Shown here in pieces: positions 8,870 to 14,328 of a stretch of DNA of 64,000 bases. A program made the translations under genes and the position numbers. The notes beneath the pieces are model-generated. The model searched no databases, was not told the DNA's origin, and worked only from the letters and a program-made list of their open reading frames with translations. Location of the stretch: the NCBI RefSeq assembly GCF_006345805.1, contig NC_043025.1, positions 992,001 through 1,056,000 of the forward strand. Direction: 5' to 3'. The stretch's first letter is position 1. Every line of letters begins with the position of its first letter. Source of the stretch: Octopus sinensis (taxonomy: Eukaryota).

Positions 8870-9394
8870 GGCTCTCATGTTTCTGATCTTAACTGATTGG
8901 AAGTGTTATCATGTACATTGTTTTGTCTTGGTATAAAAGATGGGCTACAGCAAATATTCTGCTCAATAACCACAGATTTGCTTGTCATTGTTTGACTTAA
9001 CCAGTTGAGCATGTCCCTTCGTGGATGACAATATGTGCATCTCTGATCACGAGCAGAAGTAGTGGGGGAGCATCATAGCCATGTGTTGAGAGGGATTTTA
9101 ATGGGTTTGAATAGTTCACCTCTGGAAACATGGGTGGTCTTTCAACATCCTTAAACAACCCTTATTCAGGGACCGTTGGCGCGGATGGGCTACTCAATCT
9201 GAAGAAAAATTCTAATGGGCCCCACCTGCAAGGTCATGTGCTGTTATCTTGATATGAGATCACCATGTCGCGCACATATGGTTGTGATGCATGTGCCTGG
9301 TGTACCTTTATCAACGGGTAGTCATGATGGGTATATTGGGCTTCGTATATTTTACCCCAGTGTCACTTTGATGGCATGCACTGCTCTCTCACTC
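8870..9394 (+). mobile_element. Unclassified non-coding retroposon 'X', longest copy (~525 bp)
   Basis: Bounded by (AAT)n on both sides; 3' end 'gctctctcactc(aat)n' shared with two shorter copies at 13652 and 14035; no credible ORF. Confidence 0.75.
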
Positions 9395-9973
9395 AATAAT
9401 AATAATAATGATGATGATGATAATAATAATAAAAATGATGATGATGATGATGATAATAATAATAATAATAATGATGATGATAATAATAATAATAATAATG
9501 ATGATGATGATGATAATAATAATAAAAAACAATGATAATAATGGTAATGATAATAATAATAATAATAATGATAATAATAATAATAATAATATAATAAGAG
9601 TAAAATAATAATGATGATGATAATAATAATAATAATGATAATATATAATAATAATGATGATAATAATAATAATAACAATGATAATAATATAATATAATAA
9701 TAATAATAATGATAATAATAATAATAATAATAATAATAATAATGATAATAATGATAATAATAATGATGATAATAATAATAATAACAATGATAATAATAAA
9801 TAATAATAATAATAATAATAATAATGATAATAATAATAATAACAATAATGATAATAATAATGATAATATTAATAATAATAATAATAATGATAATAATAAT
9901 AATAATATAATAATAATAATAATAATAATAATAATAATAATAATAATAATAATAATAATGATAATAATAATAA

Positions 9974-10260
9974 TTAACTGGTATGATTGTCTTAACTGGT
10001 AGATTGTCTTAACTGGTACATCACACGTATTGAGAAGAGCAGATTGTCTTAACTGGTACATCACACGTATTGAAAAGAGCATTGTCGATGTGAGAACTGT
10101 TGCTGCTCATGTATTTTAATTTAACTTAAAAAAAAAAAAATGAATGAACTACTGAGTTTGGTTTAATGGCCTACCAATATACACTATGAGTTTCATTGCC
10201 CTGGGAGTCGGGAAGACACTCGGCAAGAAATGGAAGAAAATTTGAAAGAAGAAAAAAAAG
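9974..10260 (+). mobile_element. 3' fragment of REL retrotransposon family 1 with reiterated 5' junction
   Basis: Matches the last codons and 3' UTR of 10553-12113; ends 'gaaaaaaaag(taa)n'. Confidence 0.9.
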
Positions 10261-10552
10261 TAATAATAATAATAATGATAATAATAATAATAATAATAAT
10301 AATAATAATAAATAATAATAATGATAATATTAATAATAATAATGATAATATTAATAATAATAATAATAATAATGATAATAATAATGATAATAATAATAAT
10401 AATGATGATGATGATAGTAATGACAATAATAATAATAATAATAATAATAATAATAATAATAATAATAATAATAATAATAATAATATAATAATAATAATAA
10501 TAATAATAATAATAATAATAATAATAATAATAATAATAATAATAATAATAAT

Positions 10553-12113
10553 TCAGTCGTGTTAGATGTTGACACAGTCATAAGAGAGCCTGAACAAGAG
10601 CAAACATACAAATATTTAGGGATAAGTGAAGGCTCTGGTATTCAGCATGCAAGCATGAAAGAGAAAATCAGGAAGGAATGTTATAGGAGAGTTCGTGCAG
10701 TCCTGAAATCTGAACTAAATGCACGTAACAAGGTGTTAGCTATAAATTCCTTAGCAGTTCAAGTTGTTACTTATAGCTACAATGTGTTGAACTGGAATAT
10801 GAGTGAAGTAAAGAATATAGATAGGAAAATACGCAAGCTGCTGAGTTGTAATAGGATGCACCACCCAAAGGCAGACGTAGATCGCCTTCACCTTCCCAGA
10901 GCCTAAGGAGGTCGAGGCCTGATCCAATTTGAACTAGCTTACAAAACAACCACAACTGGACTGGCCAAATATCTCGAAATAACGAATGACTGGATGCTAA
11001 AGCTCGTGGAAAATCACGAGAGACGAAAGAAGCTTCATTCTATCATAAAGGAACGCAAAAAATTTGCTATTGATCTCGAGCAGGATACCCAAACTGAACA
11101 ACCCGAGGGAAGTACGGCAGCTATTGTTGCAAAGAAGGTAAAAATAATGGCAACGAAAAAAGCGCACGAGCAATTGGCTGATAGGTGGGAGGAGAAACCT
11201 CTGCACGGCAAATATGTGGCCCGCAGCAAACAAGCTGATGTTGACCAGAAGCAAACCCATCAGTGGCTACGGAGCTCAGGGCTAAAAGCAGAGAGCGAAG
11301 GTTTCATCCTGGCTGCTCAAGATCAAAGCCTATTAACCCGGAACTACCAGGCCAATGTGATGAAAAATGGAGCAGACCCAAAAATGCCGATTCTGCAACG
11401 ACATGATTGAAACAGTGGACCACCTAATCTCTGAATGTAAAGTCTTAGCACCAGTGGAGTATAAATTAAGGCATGACAGAGTTGGACAATATCTCCACTG
11501 GCTAATAAGTCGGCATTACAATATCAAAAACTGCCGACAGTGGTATAATCACCACCCTGAGGCTGTAACTGAAGGAGAAAATGTAACCATTCTGTGGGAC
11601 TTTCCAGTACATACAGACCGAACCATCAAGGCCAATAAACCAGATATTGTTATGAAAGACCAAAACAATAAAGTTTGCTTATTGATCGACATGAGCATCC
11701 CCTGTGATCATAATATCTCGGCGAAAGAGTTTGACAAGCTCAGAAAATATAAAGACCTACTCATTGAAATTGAGAAAATGTGGCATCTCAAGGCGGTTAC
11801 AATACCAGTGATCGTAGGAGCACTAGGAATGATCAAGAAGGGAACCCAAAATTATATGAGAATGATCCCTGGCTTACCATCCCTGCAAGAAGTGCAAAAG
11901 ATTGTCTTAACTGGTACATCACACGTATTGAGAAGAGCATTGTCGATGTGAGAACTATTACTACCCATGTATTTTATTTAACTTTAAAAACATGAACGAA
12001 CTAGTGAGTTTAGTTTAATGGCCTACCAATGTATACTATGAGTTTCTCTGCCCTAGGAGTCGGGAAGACACTCGGGAAGAAATGGAAGCAAATTTGAAAG
12101 AAGGAAAAAAAAG
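10553..12113 (+). mobile_element. 5'-truncated R4/Dong-like non-LTR retrotransposon, family 1
   Basis: RT C-terminus (YKYLG, RMHHPKADVDRL), WLRSSGLKAESEGFILAAQDQ, CCHC knuckle CRFCNDMIETVDHLISEC, REL motifs RHDRV / KPDIV / LIDMSIP / KYKDL; TAA repeats directly at both ends; stop and frameshift present. Confidence 0.9.
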
Positions 12114-12264
12114 TAATAATAATAATAATAATAATAATAATAATAATAATAATGATGATAATAATAATAATAATAATAATAATAATAATAATAATAATAA
12201 TAATAATATTAATAATAATGCTAATAATAATAATGATAATAATAATAATAATGATAATAATAAT

Positions 12265-12560
12265 AGGCCAGATATAGTAATTTAGTTATACAAGATCACC
12301 AAGTAAAAATGACCATGTTTCTCTAAAAGAAATGGCGAAACTGAAAGTACAAAGATCTGAAAATAGAAGTAACTCAAATTTGGAGCCTAAAAAATAAAAA
12401 CAGTCCCTATTATTGTAGGCACATTTGGTATGATAAAAAAAACCCCAAAAATAATTCAGACAAACACATAACAAAAACGCCAGGACTTGCAAGTATATAT
12501 GATATGCAGAGAATAGCACCACCAGGCACACAGAGTTGTGCTCAGTAGTGCAGTGAAAGG
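12265..12560 (+). mobile_element. Old, decayed 3' fragment related to REL family 2
   Basis: RPDIV...KYKDLKIEVTQIW...VPIIVG.FGMIKK remnants; 3' UTR 'ggcacacagag..gctc.gtagtg.agtgaaag' shared with 51761-53591. Confidence 0.8.
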
Positions 12561-12574
12561 AATAATAATCATTT

Positions 12575-12782
12575 CTTATAAGCACAAGGCCTGGAATTTG
12601 GGGGGAGAGAGTGTTTGTTGATTATATCAACCCCAGTGTTTCAATGATACTCAATATATTGACCCCAAAAGTATGTAAGGCAAAGTCAACCTCAGCAGAA
12701 TCTGAACTCAGAATGTAGCAAACGGGGAAATACTGCTAAGCATTTCATCCAGCATGCTAACAATCCTCCAGCTCACTGCCCC
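12575..12782 (-). mobile_element. tRNA-type SINE
   Basis: Minus strand gives the family core 'ttagca..ttctgagttca..ctttgcc..ggggt..aggccttgtg'; many copies in the window. Confidence 0.8.
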
Positions 12783-13651
12783 AATAATAATAATAATAAT
12801 AATAATGATAATAATAATAATAATAATAATAATAATAATAATAATAATGATGATAATAATAATAATAATAATGATGATAATAATAATAATAAAATAATAA
12901 TAATAATGATAATAATATAATAATGATAATAATAATGATAATAATAATAATAATAATAATAATAATAATAATATGATAATAATAATAATAATAATAATGA
13001 TGTAATAATAATATAATAATGATAATAATAATAATAATAATAATAATAATAATAATGATGATAATAATAATAATAATAATAATGATAATATAATAATAAT
13101 AATAATAATAATAATAATGATGATAATATAATAATAATAATAATAATAATAATAATGATAATAATAATAATAATGATAATAATAATAATAATAATAATAA
13201 TAATAATAATAATAATAATAATAATAATAATAATGATAATAATAATAATAATAATAATAATATAATAATGATGATAATAATAATAATAATAATATAATAT
13301 AATGATAATAATAATAATAATGATAATAATAATAATAATAATAATGATGATAATAATAATAATAATAATGATAATAATAAAATAATAATAATAATATAAT
13401 AATGATGTGATAATAATAATAATAATAATAATAATAATAATAATAATGATAATAATAATAATAATGATAATAATAATAATAATAATATATAATAATAATA
13501 ATAATAATGATAATAATAATACAAATAATGATAATAATGATAATAATAATAATAATAATAATAATAATAATAATAATAATAATAATAATAATGATGATAA
13601 TAATAATAATAATAATAATAATAATAATAATAATAATAATAATAATAATAA

Positions 13652-13759
13652 TGCATGTGCCTGGTGTACCCTTATCAGACGGGTAGTCATGATGGGTATA
13701 TTGGGCTTCGTATATTTTACCCCAGTGTCACTTTGATGGCATGAACTGCTCTCTCACTC
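13652..13759 (+). mobile_element. Element X, short 5'-truncated copy (~108 bp)
   Basis: Matches the last ~110 bp of 8870-9394; (AAT)n on both sides. Confidence 0.85.
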
Positions 13760-14034
13760 AATAATAATATTAATAATAATGATGATAATGATAATGATAA
13801 TAATAATAATAATAATAATAATAATAATAATGATAATATAATAGTAATAATAATGATAATAATAATAATAATAATAATGATAATAATAATAATAATGATA
13901 ATGATAATAATAATAATATTTATTAGTAATAATAATAATAATAATAATAATAATAATAATAATAATAATATAATAATAATAATAATAAAATAATAATAAT
14001 AATAATAGTAATAATAATAATAATAATAATAATT

Positions 14035-14328
14035 ATTTGAATAATTCACCTCTGGAAACATGGGTGGTTCTTTCAACATCCTTAAACAACCCTTATTCAG
14101 GGAGCTTTTGTGCGGGATGGGCTACTCAACCTGAAGAAAATTCTAACTGGGCCCCACCTGCAAGATCATGTGCTGTTTATCTTGATATGAGATCACCATG
14201 TCGCGCACATATGGTTGTGATGGATGTGCCTGGTGTACCCTTATCAGACGGGTAGTCATGATGGGTATATTGGGCTTCGTATATTTTACTCCAGTGTCAC
14301 TTTGAACGCATGCACGGCTCTCTCACTC
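14035..14328 (+). mobile_element. Element X, medium 5'-truncated copy (~294 bp)
   Basis: Matches the 3' ~300 bp of 8870-9394; (AAT)n on both sides. Confidence 0.85.

Follow-up and report, generated by a model that had tools for sequence, protein, structure and literature searches.

A short AAT-targeted retroposed sequence in Octopus sinensis and its possible dependence on Dong/R4-like LINEs

This study concerns a short non-coding sequence, here called X, in a stretch of 64,000 nucleotides of the Octopus sinensis genome (contig NC_043025.1, positions 992,001 to 1,056,000; hereafter, the window). X is very probably a retroposed sequence that is targeted to AAT repeats. It may furthermore be a discrete non-autonomous element of ~0.5 kb, mobilized in trans by the machinery of an AAT-specific long interspersed nuclear element (LINE), an interpretation to which we give about an even chance. 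We favor this account because the copies of X are co-terminal and share one orientation, because an empty site and a copy at a second locus were found, and because of a LINE fragment restricted to the X-bearing half of a segmental duplication and of nested duplications at 5' junctions.

Results

Copies of X and their common 3' end

With X1, the longest copy in the window, as the query, a BLASTN search of the whole 64-kb window returned exactly three copies of X (X1, X2 and X3), all on the plus strand (Table 1). The original prediction had given their lengths as 525, 108 and 294 bp, which is right to within one base (525, 109 and 294 aligned columns). It had also described a shared 3' end followed by (AAT)n and a variable 5' extent, and both BLASTN and multiple alignment agree with this description. 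In the alignment, X1, X2 and X3 have one common last base, ...GCTCTCTCACTC, with AATAATAAT directly after it; (AAT)n lies directly 5' of each copy, and the copies differ in 5' extent only. The 3' end of X1, ...CTCTCTCACTC, is followed by (AAT)5 and then by the same GAT/AAT pattern as at the empty site described below, and the 5' junction of X2 reads AAT followed by GCATGTG. When a fourth copy from another locus is included, the common 3' end ...CTCTCTCACTC plus (AAT)n is present in four of four copies (~594, 525, 293 and 109 bp).

The copies are 93-97% identical to one another and carry mosaic diagnostic variants. A profile built from them detected no further copy in the window, even a diverged one (nhmmer --max). 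The guanine-cytosine (GC) content of X is 44%, above the ~35% typical of most of the window, and runs of four T residues (T4) occur within X1 at positions 52, 227 and 481. X1 has a consensus TATA box, TATAAAAG, close to its 5' end, at window positions 8932-8939 (X1 positions 63-70); it is a candidate promoter only.

Insertion into AAT tracts and the empty site

The window consists nearly entirely of repeats, and at 8.8-14.4 kb a long and imperfect microsatellite of (AAT)n/(GAT)n on the plus strand is broken up by inserted elements. Self-comparison revealed that positions 1-17440 (copy A) are duplicated at 40700-55440 (copy B) with 96-98% identity. The period of this segmental duplication is 40.7 kb, and an older partial third copy is found at 25653-28241 (76-89% identity). 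A gap of 100 N at 22248-22347 falls between copies A and B; given this gap, the two copies may reflect a haplotig or an assembly artefact. If they are alleles, the X insertions would be polymorphic.

In the self-comparison of the window, copy B was found to contain no copy of X. Instead of X1, it holds an (AAT)n run of ~15 units. The joined flanks of X1 (8700-8869 plus 9395-9620) align to copy B at 49250-49640 with 98% identity; changes in microsatellite length are the sole differences, and the idiosyncratic GAT/AAT pattern runs across the junction. Around X1, copy A has ~11 more AAT units than copy B, a surplus in which tail, target-site duplication and slippage are indistinguishable because the sequence is pure (AAT)n. 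X1 was inserted into a pure AAT run after the segmental duplication, and the empty site in copy B therefore indicates that X is mobile and AAT-targeted. All four copies of X are flanked by AAT repeats on both sides, in the orientation that the Dong-like LINE copies have relative to (AAT)n. Copy A has gained about six inserts (X1, a family-1 LINE fragment, a family-2-like LINE fragment, a short interspersed nuclear element (SINE), X2 and X3), and copy B has gained one (family 2). Alternatively, this imbalance could have arisen through the loss of inserts from copy B.

A fourth copy at a second O. sinensis locus

A protein match between the family-1 LINE of the window and the annotated gene LOC115230721 led to the O. 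sinensis contig VCDQ01003308.1 (L003), which carries a fourth copy of X at 10931-11524, 95% identical to X1 positions 38-525. This copy is embedded in (AAT)n, and its 3' boundary, CACTC followed by AAT, is that of the window copies. It lies ~270 bp past the tail of a family-1-like LINE and is succeeded by more (AAT)n and a SINE. Since the LINE's own 3' untranslated region (UTR) and tail separate it from the family-1-like open reading frame (ORF), X is not the UTR of that LINE. The two longest copies, X1 and the L003 copy, start within 37 nt of each other. The L003 copy shows X to be a dispersed family, with ~95% identity kept between window and L003 copies; X was present in two of the three AAT-tract loci examined (copy A of the window and L003, not copy B). 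Together with the empty site, the L003 copy strengthens the original proposal of a retroposon in (AAT)n whose 3' end is fixed and whose 5' ends vary.

The L003 locus also shares several other repeats with the window at 80-90% identity. The gene LOC115230721 itself (L003 10001-10405), annotated as an "uncharacterized protein", is in fact a piece of a transposon: it corresponds to the C-terminal endonuclease region of a Dong-like LINE. In the L003 copy of X, the TATA motif repeats with a 32-nt unit, as TATAAAAT (10993-11000), TATATAAT (11025-11032) and TATAAAAG (11057-11064).

X was absent from the other loci fetched by the LINE protein searches (L001 and L004-L007, of which L005 and L006 are from other organisms). 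Exact-pattern scans gave 0 matches in metagenome contigs and 0 in viral contigs. Among prokaryotic genome contigs, a 24/25-nt match in a Saccharibacteria metagenome-assembled genome was taken as chance, as the similarity goes no further. A protein search with a 60-aa ORF of X, aimed at spurious ORFs called on other X copies, returned no candidates, and exact look-ups of three window ORFs (508, 458 and 194 aa) matched no record.

Coding capacity, RNA class and structure of X

The original prediction had seen neither an ORF nor a tRNA-like head in X, and the present searches concur. ORF listing and six-frame translation yielded short, stop-bounded ORFs of <=72 aa, none of which had a Pfam match at E<=1. 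ARAGORN found 0 tRNA genes in the whole window, and X had no Rfam match of any kind at E<=1, whether to ribozymes (among them those like the hepatitis delta virus ribozyme), to small RNAs or to other families. A polymerase III head of the tRNA, 5S, 7SL or snRNA type, as expected of a SINE, was thus not seen in X with ARAGORN or Rfam. Folding of the 3' region, a check proposed at the outset, was run: folding was not significant for the shared 3' 109 nt (z -0.7 to -1.4) or for the whole element (z -1.7), and X contains no internal repeats of note. The absence of 3' similarity to the two neighboring LINE families was also upheld, as X aligned locally to their 3' ends no better than dinucleotide shuffles did (z -1.5 to +1.7). 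The 3' end of an O. sinensis LINE likewise gave no similarity above shuffles; the tail that a SINE shares with its partner LINE was found for none of the three.

None of the four copies of X reaches an ORF or exceeds ~600 bp, and tblastn detected no LINE fragment beside X. Longer copies that join a coding LINE, the outcome which had been named as contrary to an independent element, were therefore not encountered, which carries little weight at n = 4. The first 27 nt of X1 (GSHVSDLN and a stop) were considered as the end of a LINE ORF and rejected: a profile of 80 LINE C-termini detects all the family-1 and family-2 ends that the window contains but misses this peptide. A Helitron was likewise rejected by the features applied (5' TC, 3' CTRR, a subterminal hairpin and insertion between A and T). 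X begins with GGCTC or ATCATG, terminates in CACTC before A, and has a fixed 3' end with variable 5' truncation.

Dong/R4-like LINEs in the same tracts

Two 5'-truncated LINE families are found in the AAT tracts of X, in the orientation of X, and each ends in (TAA)n. Their 3'UTRs are ~160 nt (family 1) and ~100 nt (family 2) in length. According to Pfam, their ORFs contain RVT_1 and a zf-RVT CCHC motif, and they match hundreds of single-ORF reverse transcriptases (RTs) of cnidarians, fish, crustaceans and insects in which a restriction-like endonuclease region lies C-terminally. Both families are Dong/R4-like by target and architecture, and it is from these traits, rather than from a phylogeny, that we infer clade membership. 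Dong elements target TAA microsatellites (PMC3812793), and Dong-R4 LINEs are numerous and recently active in Octopus vulgaris, with five recently active families (PMC13282606).

Three of the five Dong-like copies in the tracts of X are longer than 1.5 kb (1.5-2 kb). The family-1 3' fragment is specific to copy A, and a Dong-like LINE was therefore active in the same period as X1; the longer family-1 LINE of copy A represents candidate machinery for X. The octopus-like Dong C-terminal contigs that were fetched (L003, L004 and L007) do not run on into X. One of these, L007 (ENA ERZ22666216, label ..MG_IT_BO..), is a 1983-bp contig in which family 1 is 96% identical and reaches 338 bp beyond the 5' limit of the window copies. 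Its label suggests an Italian sewage metagenome, and the contig probably derives from octopus DNA in that sample.

A hairpin, CCCUA-(6 bp)-UGGNW-(6 bp)-CGG, was found 45-55 nt upstream of the (UAA)n tail in Dong-like LINEs of the family-1 type from three hosts (octopus family 1 and the LINEs in L005 and L006). Five of its six pairs show compensatory changes, and 95% of cells are paired versus 73% in shuffles. The covariance model of this hairpin (R1) recovers only its training sequences and one near-identical paralog (E 1e-7 to 1e-10), and no Rfam match covers the window copies in the scanned stretch. Since family 2 scores at chance level with the model (E 8.4), the hairpin is not shown for every Dong-like family; in family-1-type 3'UTRs it is a candidate protein-binding element. 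The copies of X are unmatched by the model (window, E<=10; L003, E<=5). The 3' region of X (ACCCCAG-GUGUCA-loop-UGGCAU) was considered as a mimic of the Dong hairpin, which is unsupported, as the covariance model gives it no score.

Nested duplications at 5' junctions

At its 5' end (10930-11063), the L003 copy of X contains nested partial duplications that share one start base, ATCATGTACATTG..., in units of 19, 19, 32 and 32 nt, after which the body follows. The junction of the family-1 fragment (9974-10081) has the same form: its nested tandem units all begin at one base, as GATTGTCTTAACTGG, and are located at 9985, 10002 and 10042. In a Tandem Repeats Finder scan of the window, L003 and L005-L007 (~125 kb), repeats of period 12-80 directly after (AAT)n occurred at these two junctions only. 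An RT that passes the 5' terminus of its RNA template and continues on short fragments from that terminus would produce exactly such nested duplications, and end-to-end template jumping is an in vitro property of the R2 RT. With one example on each side, this suggests that X and family 1 were integrated by the same kind of enzyme.

Other repeats in the window

An abundant octopus-type SINE family is also present. Its younger, plus-strand copies are located in or beside (AAT)n and have AAT/GAT/AAC-like tails (the copies at 12561-12780 and 14399-14663 lie in (AAT)n), and its older, minus-strand copies lie outside the AAT tracts. The remaining LINE copies are unrelated to X. The one at 36154-39121 has long ORFs of 410, 161 and 458 aa. 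(TA)n tracts follow this LINE (~39186) and the LINE at 59326-62311 (~59040), suggesting LINE families with (TA)n tails.

Table 1. Locations of X, its target tracts and other repeats (window coordinates unless a contig is named)
Feature	Location	Strand	Remarks
(AAT)n target tract	8805..8869	+	Immediately 5' of X1
X1	8870..9394	+	Longest window copy, 525 bp; 5' end abuts (AAT)21; BLASTN, alignment
AAT/GAT microsatellite	9395..9972	+	3' of X1; colinear with copy B from ~49383 onward
Family-1 3' fragment	9973..10260	+	Copy A only; nested tandem duplications at 5' end
Family-1 LINE, 5'-truncated	10551..12113	+	RT C-terminal part, CCHC motif, restriction-like endonuclease region, 160-nt 3'UTR
Family-2 diverged short copy	12266-12556	+	Copy A
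(AAT)n-rich tract	12783..13650	+	868 bp; 5' of X2
X2	13651..13759	+	109 bp, 5'-truncated; 97.2% identity, E 2e-47; 3' end of X1
(AAT)n-rich tract	13760..14035	+	Separates X2 from X3
X3	14036..14328	+	~293 bp (294 aligned columns), 5'-truncated; 93.5% identity, E 1e-120; 3' end of X1
(AAT)n	14329..14385	+	3' of X3
Empty site for X1	49357..49402	+	Copy B; (AAT)n run of ~15 units; self-comparison, flank alignment
Family-1 paralog of 10551-12113	50027-51602	+	Copy B
Family-2 LINE, 5'-truncated	51762..53591	+	Copy B only
Octopus-type SINE	12561-12780, 14399-14663, 53630-53830, 53890-54060	+	Abundant family
Octopus-type SINE	29157-29512, 31122-31357	-	Older copies, outside AAT tracts
Other LINE copies	36154-39121 (+), 56045-57241 (-), 59326-62311 (-)		RVT_1; one with endonuclease and C2H2 zinc finger; unrelated to X
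Hairpin copies	Window 12045-12085, 10193-10233, 51532-51572; L003 10602-10641		
Hairpin copies	L005 10751-10791, 14954-14994; L006 10767-10807; L007 1851-1891		

Discussion

A mechanism can be proposed in which X is a non-coding RNA that ends in ...CACUC(AAU)n and would be copied in trans by the restriction-like-endonuclease RT of an AAT/TAA-specific LINE of the Dong/R4 kind. The LINE protein would nick the (TTA)n strand, and the nicked DNA would pair with the (AAU)n tail of the X RNA. Synthesis of cDNA would then proceed from the fixed 3' end, and frequent early stops would leave 5'-truncated copies. Once past the 5' end of the RNA, the enzyme could jump onto short 5' fragments, and nested 5' duplications would result. 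In this scheme we infer the trans-mobilization, the LINE responsible, the pairing of the tail and the template jumping.

The original prediction left a choice between a non-autonomous partner of TAA-specific machinery and the 3'UTR of a LINE. The evidence, drawn from four copies, leans to the partner. A discrete element is favored because no copy of X is longer than ~600 bp while three of five Dong-like copies reach 1.5-2 kb, because the two longest copies of X start within 37 nt of each other, and because X contains no coding remnant and no detectable family-1-type hairpin. Several points weigh against this interpretation. In a sample of only four copies, one that extends into an ORF may have been missed. 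The 37 nt at the 5' end of X1 are absent from the L003 copy. The family-1 nested duplication sits at an internal truncation point, and position 38 of X1 is therefore not proven to be the native 5' end. X lacks a recognizable polymerase III head and contains T4 runs, which argues against a classical SINE. Finally, the partner of a stringent LINE is expected to mimic the 3' end of that LINE, and X has neither LINE 3'UTR sequence nor a match to the hairpin model.

The strongest alternative, a real possibility that we nonetheless place well short of even, is that X is the 3' end (a 3'UTR of at least ~500 nt) of an unseen autonomous LINE, whether of a third Dong/R4-like family or of some other LINE type tailed by (AAT)n, and that all four copies are 5'-truncated. 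A fixed 3' end with variable 5' ends is the usual signature of LINE 3' fragments, which are in general the commonest explanation for such a pattern, and a polymerase II LINE transcript would fit both the missing polymerase III head and the T4 runs. Furthermore, the 3'UTRs compared here come from two or three LINEs, against the five recently active Dong-R4 families of O. vulgaris (PMC13282606). The non-identical 5' ends of the two longest copies, the nested duplication at an internal truncation point of family 1 and the small number of copies are all compatible with such a LINE. However, the profile search turned up no trace of an ORF where X1 begins, and all four copies measure <=~600 bp where lengths of 1.5-2 kb are common among the Dong-like copies of the same tracts. 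Families 1 and 2 have 3'UTRs of only ~160 and ~100 nt, the Dong C-terminal contigs L003, L004 and L007 do not continue into X, and X is unmatched by the family-1-type hairpin model, on which family 2 itself is at chance level.

If X is instead a discrete element mobilized in trans, it might be a self-propagating retroposon of the polymerase II type that parasitizes a microsatellite-specific, restriction-like-endonuclease LINE through pairing of its (AAU)n tail alone, without mimicry of the hairpin. We consider this rather unlikely. The suggestion that the tail is all that is recognized derives from a negative result, and it is offered as a tentative one.

As another alternative, X could have come from the 3' portion of a transcript made by host polymerase II, either an mRNA 3'UTR or a long non-coding RNA, that ends in or beside (AAU)n and was occasionally retro-copied by the AAT-specific LINE machinery; its copies would then resemble processed pseudogenes instead of forming a self-propagating family. 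Recognition of the tail alone would allow any RNA with an (AAU)n end to be copied. The non-coding character of X and its lack of a SINE head would agree with such an origin, as would its GC content of 44% in a window mostly at ~35%. We regard it as improbable, since four copies in two of three AAT loci, 93-97% identical and with mosaic variants, look like an abundant multi-source family, and no parent gene is visible. Very improbable indeed is the origin of the copies by local DNA duplication (unequal crossing-over or slippage in the (AAT)n array) rather than by retroposition: three copies do lie within 5.5 kb of one recombination-prone array that is itself in a segmental duplication, but such an event would copy the same 5' boundary, whereas the three copies each begin at a different point and all end at the same base; the copies differ by 3-7%, the empty site is clean, and the L003 copy, with the same 3' boundary at an unrelated O. 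sinensis locus, rules out a purely local duplication.

If X is a non-autonomous partner, then a site-specific restriction-like-endonuclease LINE would have mobilized a foreign RNA that lacks the LINE's own 3'UTR element. This would bear on template choice in an ancient LINE group. Tail-only recognition would be a relaxed mode among the R2/R4 elements, a group normally considered stringent. The findings also bear on how the long AAT microsatellites of octopus grow into nested "landing pads". In practice, X adds one more repeat family, a real but fairly ordinary one, to octopus annotation; if X is merely a LINE 3' end, its value is for annotation alone.

Comparison with known systems

The closest parallel in target choice is Dong, of the R4 clade in the R2 group, whose (TAA)n-specific members include Dong of Bombyx mori, DongAg, and DongBg in the snail Biomphalaria (PMC3812793). 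Like Dong, X occurs only in (TAA/AAT)n, in a fixed orientation, ends in the repeat and is 5'-truncated, and it shares its tracts with two Dong/R4-like families. Unlike Dong, X has no ORF, no similarity to the local LINE 3'UTRs and no match to the CCCUA-stem-loop-CGG hairpin model.

Short internally deleted elements (SIDEs) are non-autonomous and arise from R2 and CR1 LINEs by internal deletion (PMC3414825, PMC6740152). X resembles them in that it is short and non-coding, would depend on a site-specific restriction-like-endonuclease LINE and has the same specific target. However, both ends of the parent LINE are retained in a SIDE, and neither of the LINE families observed here matches X at its 3' end. 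This comparison with possible parents covers 3' ends, as the window and the fetched loci hold no full-length LINE 5' end.

With classical SINEs, X shares a length of ~0.1-0.6 kb, non-coding character, a proposed dependence on a LINE and a repeat tail. It differs from them in having internal T4 runs and neither a polymerase III-type head nor an identifiable LINE-derived tail. A 14/16-nt motif, ACCCCAGTG..TCACT, is common to the 3' region of X and the SINE of the window; it is not significant after multiple testing. Among recently active insertions in O. vulgaris, 893 unclassified SINE families and 58 unknown families have been counted (PMC13282606). X may already sit unnamed in an octopus repeat library.

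If (AAU)n is the sole feature that X shares with its LINE, recognition would occur through pairing of the tail with the nicked target, as in tail-only mobilization of the L1 type. Trans-mobilization through the tail alone is seen when L1 copies Alu or processed pseudogenes by way of poly(A), and in microsatellite-tailed LINE/SINE pairs. To our knowledge, it has not been shown for any restriction-like-endonuclease LINE. Target-primed reverse transcription by R2, a related element, requires R2's own 3'UTR sequences to begin (PMC3414825). In sum, X fails the SINE tests of head and LINE-derived tail and behaves as a LINE-dependent non-autonomous retroposon (SINE or SIDE) with Dong-like target choice.

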